Positions 21,820-52,852 of a stretch of DNA of 64,000 nucleotides are shown piece after piece; the stretch's first letter is position 1; each line of letters begins with the position of its first letter. The notes below the pieces were generated by a model that did no database searches, was not told the origin of the DNA, and saw only the letters and a program-made list of their open reading frames with translations. The translations under genes and the position numbers were made by a program. Source of the stretch: Klebsormidium nitens (Eukaryota > Plantae > Klebsormidiophyceae); assembly GCA_000708835.1 (NCBI GenBank), contig DF237146.1:85127-149126 (forward strand), read 5' to 3'.

Positions 21820-21821
21820 GG

Positions 21822-22444
21822 TAGAGGTCCCGCCGGCCGTTTCTGTCACAAACAAAACCTCCGACGTGGCCGGGCCGGGTCCGAGCAATCCCCCTTGCAA
21901 TCGCCTGGAAATCTACAGAGTGCACCGGCTGAAGCGAAACGCCCAAGAAGGTTGTGTTGGGGAAAATCGAGTTCGCAACACTGTCCGCAACTTTGTTCTG
22001 GGGGTAGATGCCCCACAGCCAAAGGCTCCCCCGCAAGCGAACAAACGTTATGACCACCCCCCCGGACATGAGCCGTGACCGAAAGCAGCAAACAGCGCAT
22101 CTAGACTCCAGCACAGCGGCTTCCACCCCCTGGCTTTGTTCAACTAGCTTTTTTTTCCGTGCCGCACAACATCGAGCCGCCAACAGTCGTTTGTAACCAC
22201 CCAGAGCTTCTACCGCTGCATCAAGCTTGGCGACCTGTTCTGGGTGATAAGTTTCGGATTCCGAGTCGCCTTGCATATCCTCTGAGACATTGCGAAAGAA
22301 GGCTTCCTTCCAGATTCCTGTATTCTCCGCCGCCGCGCGGTGCAGGGGCGCCAAAGCGCACGTGCTCCGCAGCAAGAACAGGGGATCCAGAGCAGCCAGC
22401 TTGCGAAGGATGATCAGGATTATGTCTTGCGGAAGGCGCTCCAT
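21822..22444 (-). pseudogene. F-box-like paralog B, 5' half (cut by the element insertion)
   Basis: MERLPQDIILIILRKLAALDP...; close to paralog L up to CCT CTA, then switches to element sequence. Also has a 4-nt GGCC deletion just before the break. Confidence 0.9.
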
Positions 22445-22776
22445 GCCTGCGTTTGAACGACTGCCAGATAAACTCCACCCACTGGGCTGAAGGCCGAGTC
22501 TCAGTGCGGCCGCGGGTCCGCAACGCGGCGGCTCGGCGGCCGCGTGTCCAACCGCCGGGCGTGCTTGCTGCCCCGGTCGGGGTTTATGATGCGAAGTGTC
22601 CGCACCAGCGGCCGCAAGTCACGTGCGCGGCCGGGTCCGCGCTCGTGGTGGTCCGCGGCCGCCTAACGCGTTGCGGCCCTGCGCCACCCGGCCGCGCGAT
22701 CGACCACGGCGCACGCGCGGCGGGCCACGGCGCGCTTACAAGCACGCAGAAGTGAAAGAGGGCAGGAAGGGCGGAC

Positions 22777-23170
22777 ATGGAAGCTCTTTCTGGCGACGTG
22801 AATCTGATGGTCCTGCGCAAGCTAGCGCCGCAAGACTCTTCGTCCCTCTCTATGCAAGCAATTTGTGCCTGCCATTCAATTTATTCAGAAGGGCGAAAAA
22901 AGACCCGGCGTCTCAAAGGAAGCGTCCTTTGGAACAGCGGGGATAGCCTGAGCCCAGCAACGACGAGAGCGCGTTAAAGCGCACTTCAGCTCCTGTGGTG
23001 GATATAAGCGACTGGTCGAGGCGCGGTGTGAAGATTGTAATCGTTGGAAACCTGACTCAATCTGAAGAACGCGAAGCGCTCGCCAAATAAGGTGCTCTCG
23101 TCAACTTTGAAAGCAGTACTAGAAAGGCTGGTCATTCTGCGAGACGGAGGGAGATTGCTTCTGTGGCGCC
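22777..23170 (+). pseudogene. F-box-like paralog C, heavily decayed
   Basis: MEALSGDVNLMVLRKLAPQD..; GYKRLVEAR at 23000-23026; RLVILRDGGRLLLW near 23125-23166; separated by stops and frameshifts. Confidence 0.75.
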
Positions 23171-24302
23171 TAGTCTTAACCCGAGAGCAGATGCTGCCCT
23201 GCCACCGGCGTCAGCTGGGCGATTTCGCGGGCCGTTGGGGACCAGATTCTACTTTGCCGACTTACTTCTGATCACATCTCCGCTTGGGCAAGTCCTTTAG
23301 AGACAAGGGCGTTCGGTCTTCTCAGATGTCATTGGAAGCGGACGCGTCGAGCGGAATCGTTTTCTTTTTTGAACGCTACAGCTTCGTGCAGGCAAGGTCG
23401 CAGCCAAGAGTCAACTCATAGAAGCTGGGCCTATAAACTGAGTGCGCCGTCTAGATCTCCGAGGCGTTGGGAAATGTTTCTCAGGAAAAGCTTCACAAGG
23501 TCTACCAGGACAAGAATCCTCATTAGTAGCTCTGAAGAGGCTAATTTGAGACTGCAACACCGCCCTTTCTGCTATACTTACAAATCACCCCTTCCAAGCC
23601 ACGGGTAAATTGTATGGTCGGGCTTCTAAATATCGAAGTCGCGGAAAGTATTGTGCGCATATGATGCAAATTGCTGGCCAGGCAGATCACGTCGGACGTG
23701 CTGGCTCCGAGTGCTTGGCTGCATGGCCGATATATTTAGGCCCGCAATTTCAAACTCGTACCTTAGCAACGGAAAATTTCCGAACATGATGCGCATATTA
23801 TGCATTGCCGAGTCTTTCTTACGTCATGGTGGTCTTGTGAAACGAAATACGACAGTCTGCAAGAGAGAGTAAAGACGAATTTGGAACCAGTTCAAACAAC
23901 GTCGCTATCATAATGCAGACCGTTCAATCAGGCAGCGCCCGTTGCCATACTCTTTTCGCAGGCGTCCTAAAGATCTCGCATTTGCTACGAAAGGGTGAAA
24001 TTAGCTAAGCAAGTTGCACATAGCTGTACTGGATTTCAGCCCAATTGTTCCGGATTGCAATTGAAGAATTCGGGTCTTGCGGAAGAGGTTCAGGACAGAA
24101 CGCAATTGTTGTTTCTTGCATAGTCGGCATACTAGGAACGGGATGGGCGTTGAGCCGACAAATTTCAGAGAACGGTAAAGTAAAAGTCGGAGAGTTCAAC
24201 GAAGCTGCTTTGTCTTTTACAGATCTGGGCAGTCGACGTTTCTTTCAATGCTACCCCTGCCTTGTAAACAGTGCTGTAGAGCATGACGCCTTGACGCCTT
24301 GC

Positions 24303-25226
24303 TTACTTGGATAGCGATTCGAATTTAGATGGACCATTCCCAACCGAGTCTCCAGTTGGGCTGACTCTTTCCCCCGAATATCTCAGATAGGAATGCACGT
24401 CACAAGTTAAGTTCTCCTTATGCGGTTCCAAATGCGAACACAGAACGCCCCGCAAACGATACCATGTAATGGATCCGCCGACCGCCCAAGGTCTCTTCGG
24501 ACGGAGAATTTCACAGCAGGCAAGTTCTGTCAAAGCAGGTGATCTTGTCTCACAGGGTGGAAGTGTGTAGAGTTCTACAGACAGGGGCCCCGGCGGATCA
24601 TTCTCGACGCTGACTCCGATGGATTTGCCAGCAACAGAAGCGTTACGAGTCTGGCTTAATTCTTTCAGTATTGCTTGGGAACTCAAATATCCAGCTGCCG
24701 GGTACACCGGCTGGAGCGAAACGTCCGCAAATCTGTAAGACGCTGAGGTCGTATATGCAGCGTTGTCTGCTACTGTGTGTTCCGGGTAGATGCCCCACAT
24801 CCAAATGCTCCGCCCTAAGCGAACGAGGATCAGGATGATCCCCCCAGAGAAAAGACGCGCCCGAAAGCAGCATGCAGCGCAAAATCCATCCTCTCGTGTA
24901 GAGCGTGCCACCCCTTGGCTTTGTTCAGCACGGTTGATTTGCTTTGCCGCACAGCATCGGGCTATCAACAGTCGTTTGTACCCACCCAGAGCTTCCACCT
25001 TTGCATCCAATTTTACACCTTCCTCTGACTTGTGAATCTCAGACTGACAACTGTCTTGCACAGCCGTCGCTGAGCCACAAAACGCTTCCTTCCAAACGTC
25101 TGGATTTTCTGCCGCGGCGCGGTAGAAGGGCGCCAAATCACACGTGCTTCGCAACAACGAGAGGGGGTCCAGAGCAGCCAGCTTGCGGAGGGTGACCAAG
25201 ATCAGCTCGTTCGGAAGGCGCTCCAT
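24303..25226 (-). CDS. F-box-like paralog D, intact intronless 307 aa
   Basis: Open ORF; LPNELILVTLRKLAALDPLSLLRSTC..VWKEAF..LGGYKRL..GPLSVELY. Confidence 0.85.
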   Translation of the reverse strand: MERLPNELILVTLRKLAALDPLSLLRSTCDLAPFYRAAAENPDVWKEAFCGSATAVQDSCQSEIHKSEEGVKLDAKVEALGGYKRLLIARCCAAKQINRAEQSQGVARSTREDGFCAACCFRARLFSGGIILILVRLGRSIWMWGIYPEHTVADNAAYTTSASYRFADVSLQPVYPAAGYLSSQAILKELSQTRNASVAGKSIGVSVENDPPGPLSVELYTLPPCETRSPALTELACCEILRPKRPWAVGGSITWYRLRGVLCSHLEPHKENLTCDVHSYLRYSGERVSPTGDSVGNGPSKFESLSK

Positions 25227-25589
25227 GCCTGCGCTCAGAACGTCATGGGAGAACAGTACAAAGACTAGTAAACATCATCTGATGGTCGATACTCAGCGCG
25301 GCCGTGGGTCAAACCGGCGCGACTGGCCGCTCGTCGACCCAACGGGCGCGGCCGCGGGTTCTCTGGCGCGGCCGCGGCCGGTTTAGACGCGGCCGCCAAA
25401 GCCTCGCCTCCCACTCGTCGCGCGGCGGCGCGCGCGCACCCTGAGCCTTTTGCCGCCCAAGTGCGAATGTCGCTTTGGAAGGCGCCGCGCGCCTGGCTGC
25501 GTAACCAAAGGACGAGCGAAGGGCGCAGCAGAAGACTCAAATGGCTCAAGCACTTTGTGGATGTGGATAAAGCGGGAGTATAGCTCGTC

Positions 25590-26370
25590 ATGGAGGATCT
25601 ACCAAGCGAACTGGTAAGGGTCATCCTGTATAAGCTTGCGGCGCAGGATCTTCCCTCCTTGTTGCGGGCCACGTGTGCGTGGAAAGGTTTTCACCTGGAG
25701 GTAAAGGGAAGTCCTGAGATCTGGAAGGAAGCCTTTTGCGGCGGAAACTCGGGGCTTGCAGACGAGAAACCGGAAGCTGAGATCATGTTGTTGGGTGGGT
25801 ACAAGCGGCTGGTCAAAGCTCGGTGGGAGAATAGCCTTTGTTTGAAACCTGAACAAACACAAGGCCTAGGATGGGTCGCACCAAGTGAACCCAAGTTCTC
25901 ATATCTCGATTTGACCAGGAGTACTCACTACAAGTTCCTTGTCTTGATGAGAGAGCAAAGCAGGATCCTGTTATATATGGGGGTTGCTGATCCGCACGCC
26001 GTCAAGGCAGAAGACGCTCGGGGATTTCACCTTCAGATCCATAGTACATAGCCCTTATTCTAGTAGACTGAGAAAACCATCTTCTGTTGATCTCGAACTT
26101 TCTTTGTCTACTTCGGGGTTAGAGTCTCTCTTTTTCCAAGCACGCCCGACTTGCGGGAAGGGTTCGAAAGGACAGAAGAGCCTCAGGGTTGGAAGCGACC
26201 AGGTAATGCAGGGTCCTTTATTCGTGGACCTGTACCACTTTCGCCAGCCGCAAAGTAACCCAAGCTTGAGAGACGCAAAGACCTGGTTGTGTGAAATATA
26301 TCGTGGGCGAGACGATGCAGACGTTCCGGCATTTACGTTCGATGGACGTTTAATTTCCGTAGTTCTTTGA
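25590..26370 (+). pseudogene. F-box-like paralog E, frameshifted
   Basis: Family WG motif (IWGLLIRTPS) lies in a shifted frame at about 25971-25978; the C-terminal half (GPLFVDLY..KTWLCEIY) is in the 25984-26370 ORF. Confidence 0.85.
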
Positions 26371-27436
26371 TGTGAGCGAACGTTCTGAAAAACAATACAA
26401 ACCTCAATATTTGGCAGCTCTGGTCTCCACGTGTGCGCAGTCAAGGACAACGCCGGCGCCTAATTGGATAAGCAGTGGGACAGGACAGTCTCGCCTTAAA
26501 AGTGACATGGAAGACCCGTTTGTCACGGCGGTTATACATATTTGAACAAGGTCATGTTGCAAGTGGAAAAGTTTTGCGCGCGACTCGAGCCTCGATTCCT
26601 GATAGAACAGGAAGACCTGAGAAAACGTTTTGGTATTTTGTATCAACTATGATATTATGCATTCTTCCTACGCGCGTCAAAAAAGGAGTCAGGATAAAAT
26701 ACCCGTCCATGAAAAGCGTGCATAACTCATCCGAAAAAGATGGTTCAGGCTGTAAACACGATTCATCATGCAAAGCAGAAGTTGCATGTGTTCCGACACC
26801 CGATTACTTCTGCTTCTTTATGCAAGCAAGAGACTAATTAAGACTCCAAGAAAAGACGATCGTACTGTAAATCTGAATTAAGGAATCTAGATGCTAATAA
26901 ATCTCTTCGTCCCTCTTCTGGAAGTCGCACCATGTTCCAGACTTCGTTTTCATGATCAGCCCGGCAGCTTTACCACCCACTTGACACTTGTCGTCAATCG
27001 CTACCTCTGCATGGCATAGGGCAGGCCGCCTGGTCAATAGGAAGATCAGACTCATGATTAACCAAGGCCTTTGATCATTCACCCTCTCTCCAAAAATCTG
27101 CAAAACTCCGTTGCGTTTGCTCATGGGCGATCATATCAAAGATGGGCGCAGGCAGAACGCTTTAGCCCGCAGGTCCTAACTAGCGAACGGGGCCGTGAGC
27201 ACGGTTCCTTGGGCGATACCGCGTTTGATTTTGACCCGCGGCCGCTGAAGCGCCCTCCTGGGCCAGGCGGCCGCCCAACGTTTTGTCCAGGCGTGGCAAA
27301 AGCGGCCGCATGACACCGATAAAACCCCACGTCGCGTCGCGGCCGCGGACGCGCTTCGAAGGACGCGCAGATCAGCAACATCTCAATGGCGCCCTGCAAA
27401 AGTGAACAGAGTTTCGAGCAGAAGCAAAGCGCGACA

Positions 27437-28192
27437 ATGGAGATTCTGCCAGGCGAACTAGTGCGGGTCGTTCTGTCGAAGCTGGCGGCGCAGGACCCTC
27501 CATCATTGCTGCGGGCCACGTGTGCCTGCAAAGCCATTTACCGGGAGGTGGAAGGAGACTCTAAATTTTGGAAGGATGGATTCTTCGGCGGAGATTCAGA
27601 TATTGGAGAGCACTGCAAAGACGAGAGCCTGGAAGCTGAGATTTTGTTGGTAGGGGGGTACAAGCGGCTAGTGAAAGCTCGGTGGGAGGTGACAGAGTCC
27701 TCGGGTTTTGAACGAAGCCGGGAGTTGCTTTCACCGTGTAGTTCCAAGACTTCCAGTTTTGATGGAAGTAGAGAAATTAACGTCAAATACCTTGTCCTGG
27801 TGAGAGACCAGAAGAGGCTCATCTTGTGGGGCTTCTTAAAGTTCACGCCATCGGGGGACGTTAATCTCGGCGATTTGACACTCACTGCTGTGAGTCTCAG
27901 AGCTTCTACTCGGGGCGACGTTCGACTTTATCTGAGTACTTCGCGGATCGAGCCGCTTTGTTCAAATACTTGCACGAGTACCGAAGAGGTGTGGGAAGGA
28001 CAAAGCAGGATGGTCGGTAGCAACTGTATACTGCAAGGGCCAGTCTCCCTGGAAAGATACGATTTCCAGGAACCTCAAAGTAATCCAAAGAATCCTGAAA
28101 GCTGGTTATGTCACACATATGTAGGACACGGTAAAAAAGTCTGGTCAGTGGACCTTTCTGGACGTTTCCTTTCCGTGGGTCCTGCGCTTTGA
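27437..28192 (+). CDS. F-box-like paralog F, intact intronless
   Basis: Open ORF; MEILPGELVRVVLSKLAAQDPPSLLRATCACK..FWKDGF..VGGYKRL..LWG..GPVSLERY. Confidence 0.85.
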   Translation: MEILPGELVRVVLSKLAAQDPPSLLRATCACKAIYREVEGDSKFWKDGFFGGDSDIGEHCKDESLEAEILLVGGYKRLVKARWEVTESSGFERSRELLSPCSSKTSSFDGSREINVKYLVLVRDQKRLILWGFLKFTPSGDVNLGDLTLTAVSLRASTRGDVRLYLSTSRIEPLCSNTCTSTEEVWEGQSRMVGSNCILQGPVSLERYDFQEPQSNPKNPESWLCHTYVGHGKKVWSVDLSGRFLSVGPAL

Positions 28193-29738
28193 GGAGACAA
28201 AACGTGAGGGCATACGTTGCCCATACGTTGGGAGGATTCTTCTGTAACTCGGAGATCAAGTGGTAAGACTTGGAGTTGTTAAGGAAGGCGGAGCCTCAAA
28301 AGATTGTAACAGATTGCGAACAAAAAGCACAGAGGTCTTCAGCTTTCTATCTTGCCTTTTAAATCCGACAACGGGTTTAAGAGGAGTTCTGATTCCCAAA
28401 CTTAACCAGGCAGGATGCTTTAGAGTGCCACTGGAATTGCATTTCCACTCATCTTCAAGAGGTCTGGCGCTGGCTATGCATAAGAAAGTCGTCAAATGTG
28501 CTTTGACATTATGTCGCAAGACGTGATCGAGATTTGGAAGCCTTAAGAGAACGGCTGTCCTCTTGATTTGACGTACTCTGGGGTCATGATATCCCATGAG
28601 ACTTGCGGCCCACTCTTAGTTTCTTGTAAGTATACTAATCAAAAGATCGAGGCAGCGCCTTCGTTGGCATGGTGCAATGGGGCAGACAGTGGCCCAAGGA
28701 TATTGCGCGTTTATGTGTAACCAAGACGATTAGGCAATGCGAAGCTTCTCATTTGCTCTCAGCTCTCAACCTTCTATTAGCTTAATGCATGATTGCATGC
28801 GGTTGGTTCGAAGGGCTGCGCTCCGAACACATTCGGGTCGAACAGAAGCGGCCCAACGGCTTCAGCCATGACATTGCTACAATCAATGCTCTCGCGCGCA
28901 TGAATGGAAGCATCTGTACTCTTAGGATAAGTGCCAGAGCTATCCGTTTCTGCGTTCATACTACTTTTTAAACGGCAACTTGAAACATGCGTACATCTTC
29001 CAATTCGCCCTGATTGGAGAGTCCGATTCCGTATCTCGCGAATAACTCTTTGATTCGCAATGATCGATGTCCAAAAGATCCAGGGAAGGCGCGTACTCTA
29101 GGAGCGAATTCTGCAACCCATGAATAGTGACTTGCCAGTATGGATATCCTTGTCGGTTGCCCGTGCCAGTGCAGTGGGCCCTTCTGAATTGAATCTGAGC
29201 GCGGTGCATGATATCGATTTCGACGTGACCAGGGAAAGAGAGAGCATGTGATATTTTGTGTGTGTATTGTATGACCCGCCGCACACTCTCTTCACAGCTG
29301 TCGTCAATCGGTACCTCTGGCGTTAGGGCAGGCCGCCTGCCAGATGAGCTAGAAGATCGGTCTTTAATTTTCGAGGCTTCTCATTCACTCCCTCTCAATA
29401 ATCTGATAACAATCCCTGGCAATCAATCATGACAGTAATATTTTAGACGGGCTGCACAGGCAGAACGCTTTCGCCAGCAGGTCCGAAGCGGCGCGGCAAC
29501 GAAAGCGGAACCGAAAAAGCGAACGGGCCGTGAACGCGCGCGCGGTTCCATGGGCGTTTACTTCGAACCGCGGCCGGAGCGCCCTCGTTTTGCCTAGGCA
29601 CATCTTACCTCCACTGCGTAACATCCACAAAACCCCAAGTCCGGTCGCGGCCGCGGCCGCGCTTCGAAGGCCGCGCAGATCTGCAACGTCTCATGGAGTG
29701 CGAAGTCAGCAGAGTTTCGAGCAGAAGCAAAGCGCGCT

Positions 29739-30510
29739 ATGGAGACCCTACCTGGCGAAATAGTGCGGGTCGTTCTGTGGAAGCTAGCAGTGCAGGACCC
29801 TACGTCATTGCTCCGGGCCAGGTGTGTTTGCAAAGCCTTTCACCGAGAGGTGGAACGAACTCCTAAGATTTGGAAGGATGCATTCTTGGGCGGAGACTCA
29901 GATCTTGGAGAGCACTGCAGAGACGAGATCCTGGAATACGAGATTGAGATGATAGGGGGGTACAAGCGGCTGGTGAAAGCTTGGTGGGAGAAGACAAATA
30001 TTTTGGATTCTGAACAAACCCAGGGGGTGCATCCATCGTGTGCATCGATATCATTCTCTTTTGTAGGACGTAGAGATATTCCCATCAATTACCTTGACTT
30101 GATGGTTCGAGCAAAAGAGGCTCATCTTCGGGGGCTTGCTCAAGCATACGCCATCAGCGAATGCGGATCTCGACGATCTGACCCTCAAGTCTGTGAGTTT
30201 CAGTGCTACTCCTCCTGGAGACGTTAAATTTTATCTGGTTACCTCGGCTCTGGTTACCCTAGAGCCGCTCTCTCCTACAGCTCTCACGAGTCCCGGCGAA
30301 CTTGAAGCGTTGGAGGGGCAGACCAGATTTGCTGGCAGCAATTACCTTGTGCAGGGGCCAGTTTCCCTGGAGATATACGATTTCCAAGAATCTCACAGTA
30401 ATCCGAAGAAACCGAAGACCTGGTCGTGCAAAATATTCGTAGGACAAGATACTGAAGATTTAGCATTTGAACTTTCTGGACGTTTCTTTTCTGTGGGCTT
30501 TTCACTTTGA
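29739..30510 (+). pseudogene. F-box-like paralog G, frameshifted
   Basis: 2-nt deletion near 30108-30118 relative to F (AGA GAC CAG AAG AGG versus CGA GC AA AAG AGG); the C-terminal half is in the 30136-30510 ORF. Confidence 0.85.
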
Positions 30511-35293: not shown

Positions 35294-35384
35294 GCTCAGG
35301 CCCCATCTTTCTCTGCGGATTCCGTGCCCCTGCAAGCTTTTCTACGTGCAATTCTAGAGAATCCTGTCGTCTGGAAGGAAGCGT
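35294..35384 (+). pseudogene. Decayed F-box N-terminal stub upstream of paralog H
   Basis: gctcagg..ccccatct..ctgcgg..ctgcaagct..gtcgtctggaaggaagcgt aligns to the start of H. Confidence 0.6.
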
Positions 35385-40281: not shown

Positions 40282-40348
40282 CTTCGCAAGCTGAGCGGCC
40301 GAGGACCCAAGTCGGAATCCTTGTTTCAGGCTTCGGCACCTGCAAGCT
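40282..40348 (+). pseudogene. Decayed F-box N-terminal stub upstream of paralog J
   Basis: cttcgcaagctgagcggccgaggaccc..cacctgcaagct matches the RKLAAQDP..CK coding sequence with indels. Confidence 0.5.
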
Positions 40349-40422
40349 CTTCATTTTGAACGGCAGTTATTTTTCATCCCCAGGCACATGCAGGAACGGC
40401 GTGTGTCTAAGAAAGCGCGCTG

Positions 40423-40480
40423 GACGCGGCCGCGTTTTCGGCCGTGGTCGTGACGCGGCCGCGTTTTCGGCCGTGGTCGT
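40423..40480 (+). repeat. Perfect 29-nt tandem duplication in the paralog J promoter
   Basis: gacgcggccgcgttttcggccgtggtcgt twice. Confidence 0.95.
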
Positions 40481-40657
40481 ACCGCGGCCGCTCGAGCGCC
40501 CACCAAACTTATTCATCTTCAATATTGCAAGACGTCATGTGAACAAACCGCACTGCCAAGCGAGACCTTATAGCGGGTGCCACATGTGGCGACGATGCTT
40601 CAAGCACGGTGCTTCAAGTAGACAAGTTGTCTACCTTGAACGTCAGCGGGGCCGGGC

Positions 40658-41470: not shown

Positions 41471-43162
41471 GATGGCAATCATAATCTGAGCGGTTGAAGT
41501 CTTGGCAAGGCCCTTCGGCCAATGTGGGGTGGCCCCTCAAGACTCCTCGTGCTCAAATTTCTCGCTAACTTTAGCTCATCGAATACTCCTCCAGACACCA
41601 TTGAAGTTCTTGTCCTAGGAGTGCGGCAACAGGCTGTGTAAAAAATGCAATTCAAGTCGGGGTACTTTTTGGGGGCTAAGACGCAGACGGATCTAACCAA
41701 AGGCGGCTCTCCCTGTCATATTTTTGTATCTTGAATCTAGTGGAAGTTTTCAGTGCTAGATTACACTTCAAGGTCTTGAAACGCAAAGAAGGATCTCGAT
41801 TGCATCTGCTTCGCTTGGCCTTTTTGTCAGGTTGCGCCTGTCAATGTATTGAACCGGGAGCCATGGTGTGTCTGGTGACCTTGCAAAATAAACTTTGTGG
41901 GCATGTGTAATTTGTGAGCACGTCAATGGTCTGCGCTTGGTATTCCACCTCCGCAAGAACTGCTTCTCTGTCAGCAATTCACGCTCCCTGCCACCGACTG
42001 GTGCTATTCTGGCATGTTCACTGTGCATCACGCTAGAACGAAGCTAGCGGATGTTATATAATCCGCTGAAGATGAGCAAGCCTCCGTTCAGAGATGCCCT
42101 TATGAATTGACTAGACACAGGATGGGCAGTGATTTGAATCTCTCTCTTTTGCCGACCTGGGTGTAATACTGCATCAACGTATGGACGAAATACTTGCTCC
42201 AATATGCCCGATGATTTTTTGAGACCAGATATGAACCCTCAGTTCTCATGACTTCCAAACAGCCATTAATGCACCGCAGACAAACCAATTGTTGAGCGGT
42301 CGGGTCACAAGCAATCATCCAAGCGAGCTTGATTGACATCCCCGTCCATCATTTAGCAGCAACGGTAGATCAGTGAAAAACGAACGGTTGAAATTACTTT
42401 TTCTGTCTTTTTGCTGCAAATTGTTCTGGACGTGGAGAAGCAGCTGTTGGGGCTACTGCGAGACCCGCGTTTCCTTAATGAGAAAAAGGGCTTCAGGGAT
42501 CACATCCCGTATTTTCTCAATTTCTAAACGATCACAATACGACTGAACCAGGATCCCTGTAATTAGCGGCGGCAGTCCGTATTGAAGAACAAGTACGAAG
42601 TGGCTGAGATCTTGCCAGCGGCTCGAACCGCTACGCGTAAAACGTTCTCATATGCTCGCGTTCCTGGGAATCTTAAACAGTTTTATCGACTTGCGCATGT
42701 TTCATGACGTGGGCGGTAATCCAAGATGGAACGAAGTGACGGAAGTTCGACTTTTCTTGTCACCGTCCCTGCATGTATGTTGCCAGTCTAGGCTACGAGC
42801 AGATGATCACAATCACACAGTAGTGCCGTGCCGACAGAACGGTGCGCTTAGCCAGCTGGAGGCCGCCTGAAGCGAGACATACGGGGCGAAGTTTGAAACC
42901 TTCAAGAGAGGAACTTGGAAAGAACGAACGAGAGCGGACTGAGAGCGAGTCCGGTTCCCTTTGACGTAAGGAATGCGGGCCGTCCGTCCGATCTGTGGAC
43001 GGCCATCAGATGCTCGAGAAGTCTTAAGGCACCAGACTGCCGGGCAAAGCCCTAAACCCTGTGCGAATCGCGCGCGACCGCGGCGGCCAAACCCTCCCCT
43101 CAGGGTTTGGCCTCTTCGAATTCGAAACTTGCTGAGTACTAGGCGGCAGCCTCAGCAAGATT

Positions 43163-44625
43163 GTGAACAAAACCTCGGTTGCAGTCGAATCTTCTTCACT
43201 TCACTGTGAGTTGAGGCGGCAGCAGCAGCGCGTCTTGGCGCTGCTAAGAGGGCGCCATTTTTCTTTCTTTGGAGAAGAAGCTTCTCCATTGGAGCTTGGA
43301 GAAGGAGTTCCCGTGGCCCTCTCTTGGTGGCCTGACAGAATGGATCACCATCTGAAAGCCCTGGTGGTGCTATCGGGAGGACCGGCTGCTCTGAAGGGTT
43401 TCAAGCTCCTACATCAAACAGAGAATAGTCCCATCTGGTGCGAAGTGATTGATGCAGCTCAGGAGGCTCAGCAAGATTCGGAAGCCGTCCTAGTCAAAGA
43501 CAACTACGGCAACGAGTTTCCTCGTCCTGTACCCCTCAAGGATTTGAGCATCGGCTACGGATCCAGGCTGCTGAAAGACCCTCTCATCCAGGCTCTTTTG
43601 AGACAGTGCATCGATGTCTCCCTGTTCTTGCAAGCTGACCTAAACGGAACTAAGGTCGACCCTTCATCCACTCAGTTTGGGGCAGGAGGCTCACAGGCCC
43701 CCAGCAGATTAGGCACACCAAACAGGAAGGAACCTCAATTCGATCCAAGCTTCTGGGAGAAGTTCAAGATTGCTCCAGATGGACCTTCCGAAGAATTCAA
43801 CTTTGATCTGCTGAAAGAAGCGGTCTCTCAGATTGCAATGAGAGGCTCCTTGACTGACTATATGGAGGTTGTGATGCAAGATTACCCTGACATGCAGAAG
43901 TCTTGGAAATCCAAGGCTCGGTATCTCCTAGATGTCTACAAGGAAGCTGATGCAAGGACCGCTAGGCTCATGGCAGCCACGTATTTCTTCGCCTCGAGAA
44001 TCAACTATGTCTCCACAGGTTGCGAGTACATGGCTACGCAGTACTGCGCTGAGGTTAAGGCAGATCTCCGGAAGTTTGGCAAGAGTGAAACCTGGTCCAA
44101 GGATACTGTCCTGAGATAGAGAGCATGATCCGTGAGAAGTTCTTCCACTTCTTGGCCATGGCTGAGAAAGAGCTCTCTAGAGGCAACGTCAAACCGATCA
44201 ATGGATGGGGAGATGCAAGGTGAGATCCCCCGTTAATCAGTGAATGATTCTAGTCTTGAGCTGCTGGCTTCAAGCACTTGCAGACAATTCTGAGAAAGAT
44301 GCCTTCTCGAATGAGACGTCGGCGTTACATTTGTTCTGGATGAGTTCCAAGAGCATCCCTTTATTGGGGGACGAAATGTCCAACTGTCATTACATCCAAC
44401 TTCTAAATGAAGCTGCCTTTTGGCTGAAAGTGCTCACAGTCGACCAGCTTGAATAGGGCGGTCGCTTTGCAACAGGCAGGTCATTCTTAATGAAGACCTG
44501 TGATTGCTTGCAGGAAGAACGGTCCAAACAAGGGTCCCGGACCGAGAGGTCCCAATCGTGCTCATGAAGACAGAAGCCAAGATGAACGAGATGATCACAC
44601 CTTGGGGAAGAGACCTAGAAGGTAG
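43163..44625 (+). pseudogene. gag-like ORF1 of the DIRS-like element
   Basis: 318-codon ORF (first ATG 43340) in the gag position; apparent 1-nt frameshift near 44112; possible spliced C-terminus (intron 44220-44513). Assignment is by position, not by motif. Confidence 0.6.
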
Positions 44626-45526
44626 ATAGCCTGACGAAAATCATTCAGAGACATGGTCCAAAGTTGAGCAGTTTGTAAATCCTGATACTTCCAAAAGATT
44701 CAGACTATTAGCTGATGTCGGTTTGCTTAGAGGCAGAAGAGAGGTTAGAGGAATCGATTAAAGTGACAATAGGGACCTGGTGAGCTTCTCAGGAGACGTC
44801 ACTGGATCCCCCGTTATGCTTCTGGATTTTGCATTCAACTCAATTCAGCTCAATTCCCTGTCATTCAGAGATGACATTCACGCACTTCATCAAGAGGCTG
44901 AATTCTGCGATGATCGAACTGCTCGAGCTGACCTGCAACATGAGTAAGCATAGTACAGCAACCTGATGATGCATTCATGATTGTACTTGAACAGGCTGTG
45001 CAACGTCAGTTTCTTGCACTTATGCTGCCTACGCTTTGAAACTGTAAGTGTGCATCATGCGCAAGCGGCTCCTACTGAGCCGTTCATGATGTCCTTTCAT
45101 CAGGTCCACAAGTGATGCAATGATCGAAGACAACCCTGACGATTGCACTGCCCTTTTGTGCAAACGATCTGAGTAAGTACTCTTAGTCCTGATTCCGCTC
45201 ATCTGGATACAATGTTATCCTAGTGATGCCGCACATTGAAGGTGGCGCAATTCATGCCAAGCAGATTAATCGAAATATTCTCATCCGAGATGCACTGCAG
45301 ATTGGACCTGATTGGCCATCTCACACACTCTTGTACCAAAAATAGGCCACTGCTCAAAAATGCAGATCATCAAAAAAGTCCCTTATCCCAGCAAGACCCG
45401 AAAGAACCCCTCGTACCTCTGATCACAAGAATCCGGGGTAAGCAGCTACCTGACCTGTCTAAGGTGCAATTTGATATTCAAAGAGACTAAAAGCCTCACA
45501 TATTAGCTCCAATTAGCCGAGCTAGC

Positions 45527-48012
45527 TTGACGCATTACCTTGGATCATTCCGAGAGAATACGGCGCAGGACTTCGAAGTATCAACTGCAACTCATAGAGT
45601 CTCGAATGATTACAGGGGTCAGGAAGAAACGCGATTCGACCCAGGGCCTTTACTGGAAGGCTTGAGCTTTGAAGCCGAAGAAGAGGAGTCACTTGAGAAG
45701 AGTACTTCCGAGTCTCCAAGCGAGGAGGTTGACTGCGAAGCAGATCCGCTCATTCCCGATTCTGCAACCGAGCCGAATAAGTTTCGACCAAGTCTAACAA
45801 AGCTCTGCACTTTTGAAGAGGTACCAGCCATTCCGGTCAGAGCTCCCTTCGACTACGACTCGGAAACCCTCAGGGACGGGGTGAGAGCGGTCCTCGCTGA
45901 AGTAGACGCATTTGGCCAAGGCAAACACGAACTAAATGAAGAGGCGGACCTGGCCTGGCTCAAAGATGTCAAAAGGAACGTCCTCGATCCCGATCAGTTT
46001 AGGGCAGGAAACTTCAATGAAACTCTCCCCGCTTGGGAGGAGCTCCTGAAGTACTCCAAGAGAAAGACCTCAAAGTTGGTTTTGGGAGCCCTGAAAGACG
46101 GCCTGAAGCCGTCGTTTGAAGGAACGGAGAAAGCTCTCGATTCCAAGAGGAAAGTGGTGAGAGCCATGCTCCACCAAACAGCTCTAAAAAGGGAAGTGAA
46201 CTCCTTCCTCAGCGGCAAATTTCCCAGCAGAGTGGAGTTCTCCAACCATCAATCAGCAGAGGACAACGCGGACTTTGTCTGGAATGAAGTCAAGAATAAC
46301 TTGGCATCCGGAGCGATCTCGGCCTACCCCAAGGGAAGCAAGCCCAAGGTGGTGAACCCGATTGGTGTGGTTTTCAATCCCAAGCCTAGAAAGATCCTCA
46401 ACGCTCGCTACATCAACCTCTTCATGAAGAAATACGACTTCAACTACGAGAAGCTCCGTGACATCCTCGTGTTTCTTAGGAAGGAGGGTTTCACGGCAAC
46501 TTGGGACCTCAAGTCTGGCTATTTCCATGTGCTCATTCATCCAGACTTTCGAACCTACTTTGGATTCAAGGTGGGCGAAGTCTACTTCCACTACAACGTT
46601 GTGAGCTTTGGCTATGCTCAAGCGTGCTACTTCTACACCGTGATTTCCTCCTCGAATTGCGAGCAAGAGGAGTCTACGTTTCGGGTTACGTGGACGACGG
46701 ACTGACGGCGAGCCAAGACAAAGCAAACTGCAGGTGGATCCTTGTCAAGATTCTCAAGCTTCTCACGCTTCTAGGGGCTCACTTCAGCATCCCAAAGTGT
46801 CTCTTGGAGCCTGCTCAGGTTGCCGATTGGCTCGGCTTTGTCGTGGACTCTCTTCACGAGCTCTTCCGGATCTCGGAGAAGAAAAAGCTCAAAGTTGTAG
46901 CAGTTCTGAAGCAGATTCTCGAGGCGAACGACGTCACGGCCCGGATGCTCGCCTCCATGGCAGGGAAACTCGTCTCCTTAGGCCCGGCAATGCTTCCCGC
47001 ATCCTTGTTCAGCCGTCCGCTTTTTGCAGCCATGCAAGGAAAGCTGAGCTGGGACGAGGTTTTCCAGAACCCAAATGAAGTAAAAGAAAGTGCCCGGCTC
47101 TTCTTGGAAAACTTCGATCGGTGGAACGGAAGGAGGTGGCACACTTTCCCGGTAACCCTTCAAACTTCATCTGATGCTTCAGACGTCGGATTTGGGGGTT
47201 TCGTCCAGTTCCCCGGCAAAGCCAAACTGCAGATCGCCGGGACTTTCTCCCAAGAGGAAGCAGCTCTGTCGAGCACAGCTCGGGAGATGAAGGGCCTTTT
47301 GAAGACCCTCCAAGCCGCCCTACAGGCTGCCGGACCGTCGGCCATCAGGAACTCCTGCTTGGTTCTCACGACTGACAATCGAGGGGCGACCTATGCTATT
47401 AATAGCATGCGAAGCAGCAGCCCTGACGTCAACAAGATCCTGCAAGATTTCTTCCTCTTCTCGTGCGAAAACGGGGTGGACGTCAAGGCCTACTGGAAGC
47501 CGCGGGAGGAGATGCAAGAAGAGGATGCACTGAGTCGTTTCCCGGATGCCTCTGACTGGGGTCTGAGCTCCCCTCTCTTCCAGAAAGTGACGGCCTGGTT
47601 TGGCGTTAAACCCTCCGTGGACCTCTTTGCGTCTGACATCTGGCACGTGACAGAGAAGTTCGTCTCGAAGGAATTCACACCCGGCTGCCTCGCCGTGGAC
47701 GCACTGAATCAAGACTGGCGGCAGCTGCTCAAGGAAGGGGACTGGGCCTGGATGTTCCCCCCTCTGAGGCACGTGGCACAAGCAATCCGTCTGATCGAGA
47801 AGTTCAGGATCAACGGCATTCTGATCGTGCCGCGCAGGAACGCGACGAACTGGTGGCACGTCATGCACAGCTGGGATCTCGCCTCCCCGCCCGAGCCAGT
47901 AGAGCTGCCCAGGAGCGAGTCGACTTGCGATCCCAGCCTGAGAGTGCCAGAAAGCGTGGTCAATCCAGCGTACTTCTCGCTTAGTGCAATAAAGATCGAG
48001 TGGAGGAACTAA
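45527..48012 (+). pseudogene. DIRS pol: reverse transcriptase, RNase H and Dam-like N6-adenine methyltransferase domain, frameshifted
   Basis: RT: TWDLKSGYFHV, VVSFG, YVDD. RNase H: SSDASDVGFGG, STAREM, TTDN, EEDALSR. Methylase-like: PSVDLFAS, AVDALNQDW, WMFPP, ILIVP. Frameshift near 46640. Confidence 0.92.
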
Positions 48013-48308
48013 CATACAAACACAGTTTCCAGTGCTTAGTTTTCGAGCGGATGTAGCACGACCGCCCAGAACGGTAGCACAAGGCCCCACTAGTCGCTCA
48101 GACATGCACGGTGAAGTCGAAGTTGGTGCGATGCGCTTCCGTTTCATAACCTTTATGGTCTTAGGTCTGGCATCTTGAATGATCAGCAACTGTGCACAAT
48201 TCCAAGCTGTTCGGTTAGACATGCTGAAAGGTCGCAAGATCGCATCATACACCTGAGCATGACGTGAGACGTGCTAATTGCATGCTCGTTCGAGGATAAA
48301 TCCCTATC

Positions 48309-49156
48309 TTAACGCGGCCGCAGTAGTCGGTCTTTCTGTACTACTGTTTCCCATATCTCCTCTACGTAGAGCTTGAAAGCACTCAGAGACTTATGTCGTG
48401 TCTTTTCCATTAACTCTCGGATGCTGTAGTTGAAACTCAAGGCCTCGTGCTGGATGGAAGAGCGCCGGAAGCTGTGTAAAGTCTCGCCCTCAAACAGCCC
48501 GGCAGCCCGCAAATGCTTCTGCAATCTCTTACGCAGAGTGCCCGAACTTATCGGGCCTGGTGCATAGCCTTTCCTATCTCGAGTCATGCACCGAAACAAA
48601 CAACCATCCTCCTCTATCTCGTATCCTAATCGTTCAAGCGCTGTGATTAGCTGAGCACTCGCCTCCAGGAAAGACAAACGGGCGGAACTTTCTGGGCTGG
48701 TGAGCGGAATCCGTGCCGACGGTTCTTGCCGCACGGTTTTCGACCAACCAGGAAGAGCGACCCCCTCCACCCGTTCACCTGTCTGTGCAGTAACTCCCCG
48801 CATTCTTTATCGCGGGCCCTGGACTCCCAAAGGTATAAGAACGCTGCACGATCCATCAGCAGATTGCATTGGTCGAGCCCGGTGCTGCAGGCAATTCCCC
48901 CCCCGAGAAAAGCTAATAGGTGATCCAGTTTCTCCTCTGAGAACACCTTGGCTCTTTTCTCTCGGACTCCTGCGTCGTGCAGCAAGACGGTGTAACCGTC
49001 ACGGTAAGATTTGACAAGCTCGGAACGGCCAGGATTGGCTGGCCCCTCAAAACCCATCAGCGTGTAGCTGCGCGAGATATGACTGACAGAATTCTTAACA
49101 GCGCTTGCTGACAGAACGTGCTCTCCAGTCTTGGGATTCACGGTACGACTCTCCCC
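48309..49156 (-). pseudogene. DIRS tyrosine recombinase (C-terminal part), antisense to gag/pol, frameshifted near 48780
   Basis: Catalytic set R (ESRARDKE), K (WSKT), HxxR (LHSFRR), H (TRHKS), Y (FKLY); core-binding region NPGRSELVKSY; N-terminus missing here. Confidence 0.9.
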
Positions 49157-49229
49157 TTATGTACAGTTTGTAGGTAAACTGAAGCACAGGTTTAGCAGTA
49201 CAAACCTAGCTAAACCCTCTGAACCCTGA

Positions 49230-49450
49230 GAAGGGCGGTCGCGCATGCGTCGCGGCCGCGGATCCGCTCTGCCGGGTCGATCCGCGATCGTCCGGGATCA
49301 GATCCCATATATGGCTATAGCTGGCTGTCTTCCTGATAAATTTGAGAGACAGGCTGAGACAGGCTGACGGATGGCGGTTGCAATTCCGCCCCCTTCAGTG
49401 AAACGTGGCCGCCAGGCGCTCTGCCGCGCAAGCGTACGCGCCTTCCGGCC
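49230..49450. promoter_or_regulatory. GC-rich promoter-like island containing GCGGCCGC
   Basis: Same GC-rich, GCGGCCGC-containing signature as seen upstream of most genes in the window (49252); adjoins the truncated element. Confidence 0.4.
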
Positions 49451-49906
49451 GCCACCTTGGTGGCCTCGACATAATGCAGTCTGATCATCCTTTTGCCAGA
49501 TACGAGCGCGCCAGCTCTACTGACGCCTGCAAACTTGTGCACCCAAAAATAGTAGAAGATTGTCTTCAAAGCTGCCAGTGGCCTGAGCCACACTGAGTGA
49601 GACGTCAAGACGTGGCGCGCTTTCCGACGGCTCAGCAAAGAACAAAGATAACCGGGAAGGGAGTCACTACATTGACCATCCCGTTGTCAAAAAGCGCACT
49701 TTAACTAGGTACATTTCGGGGTCCCGAACTTTCCGCTGGCTGGGGCTGGCACCGTCCGATGAGTGCCACGTATAGGGACCGAGTCCAAGTCTGTCAGAAT
49801 TGCACTTGTACACTGCGGCAGTACTTTCTCCGTCGAGTGTACTCGGAAAATTCAAGGTTACAAGAATTCACCGTCGGCAGGTTTATCCTAGCTGGCGGTA
49901 CTAGCC

Positions 49907-49986
49907 NNNNNNNNNNNNNNNNNNNNNNNNNNNNNNNNNNNNNNNNNNNNNNNNNNNNNNNNNNNNNNNNNNNNNNNNNNNNNNNN
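49907..49986. other. Assembly gap (80 N)
   Basis: Run of N. Confidence 1.
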
Positions 49987-50114
49987 CCAGTTCAATTCCG
50001 TACATTTGACGTGGCCCCGCTGGATGAACAGCCCCGTATCTTGCGGGCCCCGGGCAAATCGTAGTGCGCTTTTTGACAACCGGCCGGACAATGTAGTGAG
50101 TACGAGAGGCCGGT

Positions 50115-51020
50115 ATGGCCCACGGGGCAGCGACGTCTGTCTCTTCTTTGAGCGACCTTCCAGGCGACGTCGTTGTGACTATTCTCCGCAAGCTAGCAGC
50201 CACCGACCCGTGCTCCTTGCTGCCTGCCACGTGTGCCTGCAAAGCCTTCCGTCAGCAAGTGGAGGACAACCCTAGTATCTGGAAGCAAGCCTTCTTTGGC
50301 AAGGAGTCAGTGGGCGAAGACCGTGTCAGAGAAGAGCAGCTTGAAGACGTGGTGATGTCTCTCGGTGGATATGAGCGGCTCGTGAAGGCTTGCACTTGGG
50401 GAGAATGCCCGGAACGCATGAGGTCATCTGAACAAACCTGGAGAGACTGGTTGCTGTGGTGCGATTTCTCTCAGTACTTACTGGACGACAGGTTACCGGA
50501 TTGTTTCCCGGGAGTGACCAAGAACCTGATCGTCTTTAGAGAGCAGGGGCGACTTCTCCTTTGGGGCATTTTGACCTAGAATACTTATGGGCCGAAATTT
50601 TCGAATTGCAAGCGAGAGGAAAGGGGCGACTTCGAATGGATCGGAACGCGTCAAGGCAATGATCACATTGAACTTTTCCTGAGAACTTCTAGTTTTGAAA
50701 CAGTCAACTGTGGCGGCGCTAGCTCAGACAGATCAAGCGAAGTAGGACGAGTAAGAGTTTCTGAAAGCGGACATATGGTTACTGGACCAGTGTCGATGGA
50801 AATATACCTGTTTCCAGACCGCATGGCAGAACCATGTCCTTTTAATGCACCAATGTCAATGCTCAAAGGATCGAGGGCTTGGAAGTGCAGACTGAAATCT
50901 AAGAAAAATGAGGACTTCGGGTTTCAGCTGAGCGGTACTTTTTACGTGCTTTACCCAAAAACAGAAGAATCCACAAAAGCTCCGGCGCTTCCGGCAACGG
51001 ACGTATGCCCAATCTTGTGA
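50115..51020 (+). pseudogene. F-box-like paralog K, single in-frame TAG at 50577-50579
   Basis: LPGDVVVTILRKLAATDPCSLLPATCACK..LLWGILT*; the same frame continues without further stops through GPVSMEIY to 51020. Confidence 0.85.
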
Positions 51021-52149
51021 TCAAAAGAAGAATCTTCTAGCAGATAAAGAGCCTCGTATTCTTTCTATCCTTAGAGGGGCGTCTCGTTCCTTGTGGCCGT
51101 AAAGATTATTATTAAGTAGCTCATGGAACGTCGGATTTCGAGCTGTTACCAGGTTTGGCAGTGCACCGATCGCGCTACCCAAAAGCTCTCTGTTATACCT
51201 ATTGACTGGTAGAATTAAGAGTCGGCCCCCGCCAGATGTTGCGTCATGTCGGCCACTCCTTACGAATGCTGTCGTCAGTGCTGAAATATACGTTTTCCGT
51301 TCATAGAGAAACAGAGATCGTGAGTCCATCTGGGCGCGAACTACTCGACGTCCCTGCTCTTCGCTCAGCAACTTGCTGTCCGTTGAGATCGACGGCGTAT
51401 AACAACAAAACGTGCACGTATGCCAACAAAATATGCTACACGGTGCATGTAATCAGGACTCCCTTGTCGAGTCTCGACCAGCAACGTCGTTCCAAATGGA
51501 TGAATTTGCTGGCTGTGACGCTGTCATGAATGTGGCTGCAACAACCGTTATAGCATGCTGAGTGGTATTAAAAGTGTGCACCTTTCGTCGGTTGCGTGGC
51601 ACATGTGACAGTCGAAGAAATCTAGGTGCTGAAAGACTTCAATTACAAATCAGAGCAATCTGGACTCTCATAGAGTTGGATCTATACAAGTCAATATGTG
51701 ATTGGATAAATTAAGCGGGTGAAAACGGGTCACACAAACCAGCACTATAATAAAGCTACCAGTCATGCAGCCCGACTTCTACAAACAGCGGCCGTTGCTT
51801 GCCTTGTCCGAGGCTCGCATTCCCAGCTCTGGCATGGCTTGCAACAAGCGGACAGATCCATCAGATACGGTTATGGAAGCATTCGGGGTATACACATAGC
51901 GCCATTGATGTGTTTGCGAGTAAGGGGCCGATCACTTGCAACATCCGTCGATTGCTTTGGAATATGACGCCTTGCTGCAAAGTGTTCGAAATTCTAACAG
52001 AAAATCCAAGGTATCCAATCCCTAAGAGCTTTGCTAATGGGACGCACCATATCCAAATCTCGAGGTTATTGAACAAGGCCTGGATGACCTTGACCCTGCT
52101 TTTGTCTTGCAAACGGTGAAGCTTGATGTCTTTGACGTCATATTGCGTT

Positions 52150-52423
52150 TTAGGTATGCGGCTTGTTTTCCCAGCAGACTCTCCAGTGGGGCTCCTTCCT
52201 AGAGTCAAATTTCAGATAGGTAAACAGTTCACAGGGCAATTTCGCCTTCCCTCTATGACGCTTCGAATTTGTCCACAGATAGCCGCGCAACGAATAGCAT
52301 GTTCCGTTCTTGTGATCCACCCAAGCCTCTTTGGAGCTAAAAGTCTCGCAGCGGCAGACTGTAGAATGTTTTTCCAGCGCGGGTGCCCTTGTCTCGGAAG
52401 GCGGAAAGGTGTAGAATTCCACA
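52150..52423 (-). pseudogene. F-box-like paralog B, displaced 3' half
   Basis: VEFYTFPPS..CRCETFSSKEAWVDHKNGT..WENKPHT*, matching the paralog L C-terminus; begins exactly at the element terminus. Confidence 0.9.
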
Positions 52424-52852
52424 GACTATTCCCAAGGGAATGAACTTTAGCATTCCTTTCTTTATTCTAGTGAAACGTCCAACGTCAGATGGATGGACGG
52501 TTTGGGGCAAGGACGGTCAGGGTTCGCTCTTCTGATGCCGCACTTCTCGCCCCAAGAACACAATTGTCCCCAAGACAACTCTTATTGACAAATAATGGGT
52601 TCGCGTTTTACAGGGCTGCTTTCCAAGCCGTCTGCCGCAATCACGTCCTAGAAACTCGTGGGCTCTGCGCGAAAGCTTCGTCCTCCGACCAGGCAAGGTG
52701 GTCCGAATCAGAGACGTTGGAGCGTTACGAGCGTTCTCTGTCTGAGGTAGTGGCAGTAGCGGATCGAGCCACAACCGCCGAGAATGTCTCAGGTCGGAAG
52801 CGGGTTTTTGAAGAGTTGACCCGTTTTCTGGAGAAGAACGCTTACGGAGTCA
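52424..52852 (-). mobile_element. 3' terminus of the DIRS-like element with a probable YR N-terminal fragment (read on +)
   Basis: First 126 bp identical to 20935-21060. The + strand then encodes LERYERSLSEVVAVADRATTAENVSGRKRVFEELTRFLEKNAYGVT, a helical segment in the position and orientation expected for the missing YR N-terminus (inference). Confidence 0.75.

Follow-up and report, generated by a model that had tools for sequence, protein, structure and literature searches.

Probable splitting of an F-box-like gene by a tyrosine recombinase retroelement and separation of its halves by inversions in Klebsormidium nitens

The locus and its features

The window, i.e., the whole stretch of 64,000 nucleotides analysed here, belongs to contig DF237146.1 of Klebsormidium nitens and harbours at least 11 members of an F-box-like family. 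Seven of ten paralog N-termini match PF12937 (best E = 3.4e-7), and gene B itself aligns with PF00646 at E = 0.0089, which is below the cutoff; among solved structures, a search with a profile built from the paralog N-termini returned no F-box chain. A C-terminal region of the type found in gene B is shared only with the paralogs L and P2, both of which are uninterrupted and provide references for an empty site. The four gene segments are as follows:

21823-22444, minus strand: gene B, 5' half, with an F-box-like N-terminus, the ATG at 22444 and a closing A at 21822
52150-52425, minus strand: gene B, 3' half, opening SVEFYTFPPS.. and ending with a stop codon at 52150-52152
59263-60653, minus strand: paralog L, uninterrupted empty-site reference, adjoining parts of which match both halves of gene B
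24303-25226, minus strand: paralog P2, a member of the gene B subfamily with an intact ORF (307 amino acids, single exon), second empty-site reference (..GPLSVELY..)

Each half of gene B adjoins the expected end of one and the same retroelement family, which is present as a short copy (E1) next to the 5' half and as a full-length copy (E2), the tail of which is detached from its body and adjoins the 3' half. The ORF that starts at the gene B ATG extends past the junction and ends within the element, at 21731. The features of the element, of the inverted segments and of a further transposon are:

20935-21821, minus strand: short copy E1 (885 nt), in which the 3' ('A') end (20935-21060/61) and the 5' ('B') end (21520-21819) enclose an unrelated middle of 459 nt (21061-21519)
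42967-49172, plus strand: body of E2, beginning with the 5' end TAAGGAATGC..
43163-44119, plus strand: gag-like ORF of E2
45527-48012, plus strand: RT/RH/MT of E2, with a frameshift near 46600-46700
49156 to 48309, antisense: C-terminal part of the E2 recombinase, with a frameshift near 48780
52424-52898, plus strand: detached tail of E2, inverted relative to the body, with the 3' ('A') end at 52424-52549 and the N-terminal part of the recombinase at 52657-52875
21823-42966: presumed inverted segment 1, about 21 kb, between the inverted B ends at 21520-21819 and 42967-43269
49173-52898: inverted segment 2, about 3.7 kb, with its left breakpoint at 49158-49173 and its right breakpoint at about 52866-52898
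49666-50098: CACTA-like non-autonomous DNA transposon, containing the assembly gap 49907-49986

Rebuilt from its body and tail, the element measures 6681 nt (~6.7 kb) and has the ends TAAGGAATGC...GGGAATAG(TC), the 5' terminus TAAGGAATGC being defined from three copies. Its genes are arranged as gag, RT/RH/MT and, in the opposite orientation, a recombinase (YR). The two pol ORFs of E2 match RVT_1 weakly, in adjoining stretches of the profile, and they are 46-55% identical over 84-92% of their length to reverse transcriptase proteins of relatives, in which RVT_1 is found above threshold together with a Dam-like MT domain and Phage_integrase. The ORF at 46501-48012 is 48-49% identical to the relatives P0009 and P0002, which match PF05869 (Dam-like MT) at E = 1e-5 and E = 0.012, respectively, yet has no Pfam match of its own. 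The recombinase pieces in the window include ..ETLHSFRRS.. and are 41-66% identical to the recombinase of the relative L002. On their own, these pieces match no Pfam profile; the recombinase of the relative L003 reaches 27.1 bits against Phage_integrase, a score equal to the cutoff. The recombinase gene lies on the opposite strand downstream of pol in the relatives L002, L003 (three tandem units) and L005; the C-terminal part in E2 is inverted too, and a contig of a related organism, organism B, is consistent with this arrangement.

By these features the element is assigned to the Kangaroo/PAT-like retrotransposons of the DIRS order. Kangaroo likewise carries its recombinase in inverted orientation (PMC4157794), and the likeness to PAT/Kangaroo elements comprises gag, RT/RNase H, an inverted tyrosine recombinase downstream of pol, the Dam-like MT region in relatives, insertion without target-site duplication and a green-lineage alga as the host. 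In contrast, PAT/Kangaroo elements have been described with split direct repeats (A1...B1-A2-B2), and none of at least 15 nt involves the termini of the rebuilt 6681-nt copy. Inverted terminal repeats of at least 15 nt and an internal copy of the end-to-end junction were likewise not found in the rebuilt element, the sole repeat of which is the 9-nt sequence AAGGAATGC; it occurs once at the 5' terminus and a second time at a distance of 28 nt from the 3' terminus. E2 is a dead copy, in which pol and recombinase are frameshifted and the recombinase gene is also cut by an inversion; it is decayed, and repeats may have been lost. The middle of E1 (21061-21519) showed no similarity to any sequence compared.

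One source gene and a length-neutral insertion

On the minus strand, the 5' half of gene B ends ..GGGACCTCTA, where the last A is position 21822, and is followed by CC and TAAGGAATGC; at the other junction, ..CCCTTGGGAATAG is followed by TCTGTGGAATTCTAC, the first T of which is position 52425. These letters agree with the original prediction. Across the insertion site the paralogs read ..GGGGCCTCTC|TCTGTAGAGTTCTAC (L) and ..GGGGCCCCTG|TCTGTAGAACTCTAC (P2), and relative to both, the joined halves have 0 bases gained and 0 lost. The CC at the boundary of E1 and gene B (21820-21821) can be assigned to either side, and length-neutrality holds equally if the element is taken as TAAGG...AATAGTC, the extent common to the element copies. 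The junction of the 3' half with the element (52423/52424) is spanned by the read-derived contigs X1 rec7 and X2 rec15.

The halves had been predicted to rejoin seamlessly, and this is correct for the junction itself but not for the reading frame. Compared with L, gene B lacks 4 nt in a GGCC repeat at 21831-21839 (minus strand), 9-17 nt upstream of the junction, so that translation from the ATG enters the element as ..NGRRDLY and the 'PL' codons fall outside the frame. Paralog L, too, carries a frameshift, caused by a 1-nt deletion in the F-box, after codon 24. The rejoined gene B has no intact ORF and is a two-piece pseudogene.

For each half, L is the nearest paralog, and the divergence is similar: the 5' half is identical to L at 541/621 positions (87.1%) and the 3' half at 235/265 (88.7%). 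P2 is far from both (66% for the 5' half, 61% for the 3' half). The similarity to L also includes the non-coding flanks, where 21829-22559 matches 59910-60653 upstream of and along the 5' half, and 51809-52363 matches 59263-59845 along and beyond the 3' half. These alignments indicate that both halves derive from one source gene, in keeping with the proposal that they form one gene resembling L and do not group with different paralogs. An opposing explanation holds that two different paralogs, each cut independently by a site-preferring element, left one piece each. Such an explanation could draw on the size of the family, with at least 11 members in the window, and on the fact that YR elements recombine with short matching targets (PMC3266345), which makes a site preference conceivable. 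Yet, only B, L and P2 possess this C-terminal region, the two halves are equally divergent from L and similarly divergent from P2, and the element pieces on the two halves reassemble into one element. Moreover, the partner halves that two truncated genes should have left are absent, since no further orphan half of the subfamily, 5' or 3', occurs in the window. Two independent truncations that coincide to the nucleotide and carry complementary element ends in matching orientation would be far below chance expectation, and we consider two source paralogs highly improbable.

Beyond the window, an uninterrupted allele of gene B was not found in metagenome contigs, and neither was a head-to-tail or circle junction of the element. 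Exact look-ups in public assemblies gave no record for P2 or for the ORF that crosses the 5' junction, and a family search with P2 as the query yielded only 4 distant relatives.

YR elements integrate without target-site duplication (PMC4157794, PMC3266345), and the length-neutral join of the halves relative to L and P2 agrees with the predicted insertion of a YR-family element in this manner. In the model for DIRS1, a short circle-junction sequence recombines with an identical genomic sequence (PMC3266345). The present insertion is similar in being length-neutral and in leaving a 2-nt ambiguity at each junction (CC on the 5' side, TC on the 3' side, with TC also in the empty site of the paralogs); it differs in that no circle junction was found for this element, and any figure for the length of the overlap is a guess. 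According to our proposal, gene B would have been a tandem-cluster paralog of the F-box-like family, most closely related to L, which was entered by a Kangaroo/PAT-like YR retrotransposon of about 6.7 kb. Conservative recombination would have neither duplicated nor removed target sequence, the 2 ambiguous nucleotides per junction (CC, TC) being the expected remnant of a short crossover overlap, and gene B may then have decayed and acquired its 4-nt deletion.

Inversions and alternative arrangements

Inversion 2 is real and cuts the recombinase gene of the element. Residues 92-327 are encoded at 49156-48450 (minus strand) and residues 4-76 at 52657-52875 (plus strand), while in organism B a 5.5-kb contig carries the two parts contiguously and, relative to the window, on opposite strands, in the uninverted form. 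The left breakpoint is spanned by the read-derived contigs X1 rec1, X2 rec8 and X6 rec27, the right breakpoint by X1 rec4 and X2 rec15 (the runs X1 and X2 possibly stem from the sample behind the assembly and are not independent of it), and contig X5 rec16 joins 49158 to 52854 on opposite strands. In organism B, a short contig end at about 52859-52873 suggests that the right junction of inversion 2 may be present there as well. X2 rec15 passes from the 3' half of gene B through the entire A repeat into the N-terminal part of the recombinase. At the break, about 15 conserved recombinase residues are absent and about 45 nt of the gene are unaccounted for. Neither homology nor a duplication indicative of a staggered break was found between the breakpoints, where the best local alignment score did not exceed that of shuffled sequence. 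Since the breakpoints show no repeat or microhomology, the mechanism looks like breakage and end joining.

An intron in the recombinase gene (GT at 52899, AG at 49173-49174, in-frame splice) was not adopted as an explanation for the split: relatives lack an intron there, the conserved motif ADVGAF..W.P.HS is absent from the window and the two parts are on opposite strands. The differences in X6 are exclusively C>T and G>A and were rejected as a sign of other element copies. For X6, a bisulfite library of this locus is the most likely source; MethylC-seq data of K. nitens exist (PMC5890265).

A further inversion would account for the remaining distance. The 5' end of the element on the E1 side has only one other copy, which is inverted at 42967-43269 and forms the start of the body whose tail adjoins the 3' half. 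The two B ends comprise 303 nt and are 98% identical, differing by 4 substitutions and one 3-nt indel, and a single flip between them restores the order 5' half - element - 3' half. This arrangement argues for inversion 1, presumably by a crossover between the inverted element ends. In the order we favour, inversion 2 would have broken the recombinase gene and the intergenic DNA upstream of an FG-nucleoporin gene, thus flipping the 3' half of gene B along with the 3' end of the element, and a subsequent crossover between the element and the oppositely oriented E1 would have inverted about 21 kb and carried off the 5' half, attached to the 5' end of E1. The predicted separation of the flanks by later rearrangements is thereby specified as two inversions, one of them seen in contigs and in the uninverted relative and the other suggested by the inverted element ends. 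The view that the full element was the original insert did not hold up as the only solution. If the crossover had taken place within the A ends (127 nt) and not within the B ends (303 nt), an identical map would result from an 885-nt insert, and thus the original insert may equally have been the full element or the short copy.

With opposed element ends exactly at its edges, inversion 1 resembles transposon-mediated inversions by ectopic recombination. It differs from that system in being known from the map alone, and inversion 2 has no repeats at its breakpoints. The element's own tyrosine recombinase might instead have catalysed the 21-kb inversion at the termini of two opposed copies. In that case the exchange of flanks would have taken place precisely at the ends of the element, and the segment may still flip in the population; this route and a crossover within the shared ends of 303 or 127 nt would leave the same present map, and we regard catalysis by the recombinase as very unlikely. 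Inversion 1, which leaves no novel junction, could also be a flip made by the assembler between the 303-nt inverted repeats. The real 21-kb segment would then be oppositely oriented, the 5' half would still adjoin the full element, and the halves would be parted by inversion 2 and the element only. Inverted repeats of 98% identity are a classic setting for orientation errors, and the scaffold is a draft with gaps. However, the repeat is short, its 4 substitutions and indel can be phased by reads or mate pairs, and the entire segment lies within one gap-free contig (566-49906); we regard an assembly error as unlikely.

The assembly gap lies within the CACTA-like transposon, a repeat at about 60x depth, and is crossed by no reading frame of gene B or the element. 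Terminal inverted repeats of about 36 nt (CACTACATTG..GTCAAAAAGCGCACT) are present on both sides of the gap, the 3-nt flank AGT is duplicated on both sides of the transposon, and contigs of organism B join 49660 directly to 50098, as expected for an empty site. For these reasons, the two sides belong together and the scaffold join is sound. The gap is probably longer than the 80 N given for it, and an Rfam search around the gap returned no match. A collapsed tandem duplication of about 31.5 kb, in which gene B is broken only by the 885-nt element at the copy boundary (3' half - A - middle - B - 5' half), was suggested by the map P-A-Q...R-A-S, where a direct 126-nt A repeat with 100% identity resembles a collapsed repeat. 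We rejected it on the basis of contig depth and of the contig that bridges the A repeat. The depth inside the unit (19.4-20 at 50210-52189) equals that outside (17.3-18 at 52626-53200) and is even lower in part of the unit (10.3-15.7), X2 rec15 leaves the A repeat into the N-terminal part of the recombinase and not into the E1 middle, and the split recombinase gene would be left unexplained. Among the readings weighed here, a collapse is the least probable. An insertion of the YR element into gene B, followed by two inversions that moved the halves 30 kb apart, is probably the history of the locus as a whole.

Significance of the locus

The locus is a real but ordinary case of transposon-driven genome decay and leaves the knowledge of such elements unchanged. 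For annotation purposes, the two pieces of gene B can be treated as one pseudogene and the two pieces of the element as one copy, and the locus lends itself as a test case for assembly checking. For a Kangaroo-like retrotransposon of a charophyte alga, it provides the states before and after insertion as a clean natural pair: two paralogs have kept the empty site and both filled junctions still exist, and together they show integration with zero bases added or removed and only a 2-nt ambiguity. Furthermore, it illustrates how an element may affect a tandem gene cluster, i.e., by two inversions that are nested and contained within 32 kb; through one of these, the recombinase-side end of the element has come to lie about 100 nt upstream of the ATG (52991) of the nucleoporin gene.

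Two halves of one F-box-like gene

The F-box-like gene B is present in two pieces:

22444 to 21823, minus strand: 5' half, from its ATG; the ORF starts MERLPQDIILIILRKLAALDPL.., then reads on into unrelated DNA
52425 to 52150, minus strand: 3' half, reading from SVEFYTFPPS.. at 52425 to a stop at 52150

In a self-comparison of the window, 21829-22559 and 51809-52363 have their counterparts in 59910-60653 and 59263-59845, respectively, and both pieces thereby correspond to adjoining parts of one uninterrupted paralog, termed L. At the first junction ..GGGACCTCTA ends the 5' half and is followed by CC and then TAAGGAATGC; at the second, ..GGGAATAG precedes the 3' half, which starts TCTGTGGAATTCTAC. 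At the same point L reads ..GGGGCCTCTC TCTGTAGAGTTCTAC, and the intact paralog P2 (24303-25226) reads ..GGGGCCCCTG TCTGTAGAACTCTAC; the halves therefore join with zero bases gained or lost. A comparison of element copies, including one on the K. nitens scaffold DF237827, sets their shared extent as TAAGGAATGC ... GGGAATAGTC. The join is length-neutral with this boundary also, and 2 nt at each gene/element junction (CC, TC) are ambiguous in assignment. Reading both junctions confirmed the letters given in the original prediction, and the length-neutral join relative to L and P2 bears out the proposed integration without target-site duplication.

The further claim that the halves rejoin seamlessly holds for the length of the junction, but not for the reading frame. 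Compared with L, gene B is 4 nt shorter in a GGCC repeat at 21831-21839, and accordingly its ATG frame reads ..NGRRDLY and continues into the element, leaving the ..RPAGPL codons out of frame. L has a separate 1-nt deletion, located after codon 24, and P2 alone of the three is an intact ORF (307 aa).

At least 11 F-box-like paralogs are clustered at 20355-60524; they have in common a GGYKRL motif and the N-terminus MExLPxDxVLxILRKLAAQDPxSLLRATC. At the family level the F-box assignment is upheld, 7 of 10 paralog N-termini matching PF12937; gene B itself scores below threshold (PF00646, E = 0.0089).

Identity of the gene B halves to the two reference paralogs
To L: 5' half 87.1% (621 nt); 3' half 88.7% (265 nt)
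To P2: 5' half 66%; 3' half 61%

By these values the two halves are alike in their divergence from L and P2. Within the window's family of 11 or more members, the C-terminal region of gene B occurs only in B, L and P2, and no orphan half of this subfamily was found other than the two of gene B. Independent truncation of two paralogs was rejected on these grounds, the halves being equally close to L. Grouping of the halves with different paralogs, set beforehand as the outcome contradicting a single source gene, was not seen within the data available: the comparison is confined to window members, and the family, which has no more than four relatives, all distant, among the proteins of the collection, is thus lineage-restricted.

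The retroelement

The full element comprises the following parts:

42967, plus strand: 5' start, with a gag-like ORF first
after the gag-like ORF, plus strand: RT, split over two frames
after RT, plus strand: RNase H/methyltransferase-like region
opposite strand to gag and pol: C-terminal two thirds of a tyrosine recombinase (..ETLHSFRRS..)

The pol of the full element shows 46-55% identity to proteins encoded on public contigs. The layout gag >, pol >, < recombinase is common to three of these (L002, L003, L005), and RVT_1, a Dam-like domain and Phage_integrase are found in the element's relatives. The inverted recombinase is shared with Kangaroo, of which it is a described hallmark within the PAT group (PMC4157794; PMC3266345), and a model of integration without target duplication is stated in PMC3266345. 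In L003 (ENA contig ctg333617, 24.9 kb) a related element is repeated head to tail at least three times with a unit length of exactly 6500 nt, and its ORFs for gag, pol and the inverted recombinase are intact; a tandem array is one reading, an assembled multimer or circle the other. The 9-mer AAGGAATGC stands at the 5' terminus of the full element (42967-42976) and recurs at a distance of 28 nt from the 3' terminus (52452-52460, minus sense). The internal copy, preceded by TAGAATAAAGA, which loosely resembles the 3' terminus GGGAATAGTCT, could be either a split repeat of minimal size or an internal junction copy.

Inversion 2 and the assembly gap

The minus strand carries recombinase residues 92-327 (L002 numbering) at 49156-48450. 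Residues 4-76 are encoded on the plus strand at 52657-52875, close to the element 3' end at 52424 and internal to it; this is the end that adjoins the gene B 3' half. In organism B, a relative, one 5.5-kb contig holds both parts contiguously, the canonical form, and matches opposite window strands with ~64 nt between the parts; the window is thus inverted at about 49173-52898 (inversion 2). Its left breakpoint is spanned by contigs built independently from the reads of sequencing runs X1, X2 and X6, its right breakpoint and the junction 52423/52424 by contigs of X1 and X2, one X2 contig extending from gene B across the entire 126-nt repeat as far as the recombinase N-part. X1 and X2 share a sample from which the assembly itself may have been made; X6 belongs to another study. 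These contigs and the uninverted form in organism B support the view that a later rearrangement separated the flanks. About 15 conserved recombinase residues are absent at the break, and no homology was found between the two breakpoints.

An FG-nucleoporin gene has its ATG at 52991, some 100 nt downstream of the right breakpoint; it starts with MARRQQPVCRDFQKGK, then GT, and has an FG-repeat exon at 56588-57340. Since inversion 2, the element 3' end and the recombinase 5' part have stood directly upstream of this gene, pointing towards it.

The inverted segment includes one further feature:

49666-50098: CACTA-type non-autonomous DNA transposon, holding the assembly gap 49907-49986

Terminal inverted repeats of ~36 nt, starting CACTACATTG, are present either side of the gap, flanked by an identical AGT (3-nt duplication), and organism B contigs join 49660 straight to 50098, an empty site; the scaffold join is therefore sound. 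The repeat has ~60 times the local depth. One contig of the repeat extends 627 nt past 49906, and the true gap is therefore probably longer than the assembly shows. No reading frame relevant to the split gene crosses the gap. Every difference between X6 and the window is C>T or G>A (48700-50200 and 50800-53200 compared), and X6 accordingly looks like bisulfite data. At a threshold of ≥90% likeness its coverage is confined to the element remnant, the neighbouring 500 nt and the CACTA element. This pattern suggests dense cytosine methylation over this stretch, and sparse methylation of the detached element tail that precedes the nucleoporin gene.

A proposed inversion 1 and the order of events

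With inversion 2 undone, the full element ends against the gene B 3' half in correct orientation, and its 5' end still adjoins unrelated DNA at 42966. The gene B 5' half adjoins the 5' end of a second copy, E1 (20935-21819, 885 nt). The two copies share only their ends, 303 nt at the 5' end (4 substitutions and a 3-nt indel) and 126-127 nt at the 3' end (100% identity). The 459-nt middle of E1 had no match in the sequence collections searched; it contains an exon-like ORF at 21347-21474 (+) (MAHAKSAFQPWKKARYQAVGSS..YDRR), followed by GTGAGT.

The 5' ends of the two copies are mutually inverted, and a single flip of 21823-42966 (inversion 1) would put the element back between the 5' and 3' halves of gene B. 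Had the crossover taken place in the 3' ends, the map would be identical, and the copy that originally inserted would be the short one. Since both crossovers give one and the same map, the original insert is not decidable between E1 and the full element, and the proposal that the full element inserted first is not upheld. Inversion 1 would leave no novel junction, and might, with low probability, be a flip made in assembly. A collapsed tandem duplication, which would produce the same circularly permuted map, was rejected because depth does not differ between the unit and its surroundings, and because the X2 contig described above bridges the 126-nt repeat.

The split of gene B by the element is real, and the original prediction was right in outline. 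The mechanism does not go beyond known biology: a YR retrotransposon would have inserted without target duplication, and two inversions would have come later, one by breakage and the other probably mediated by repeats.
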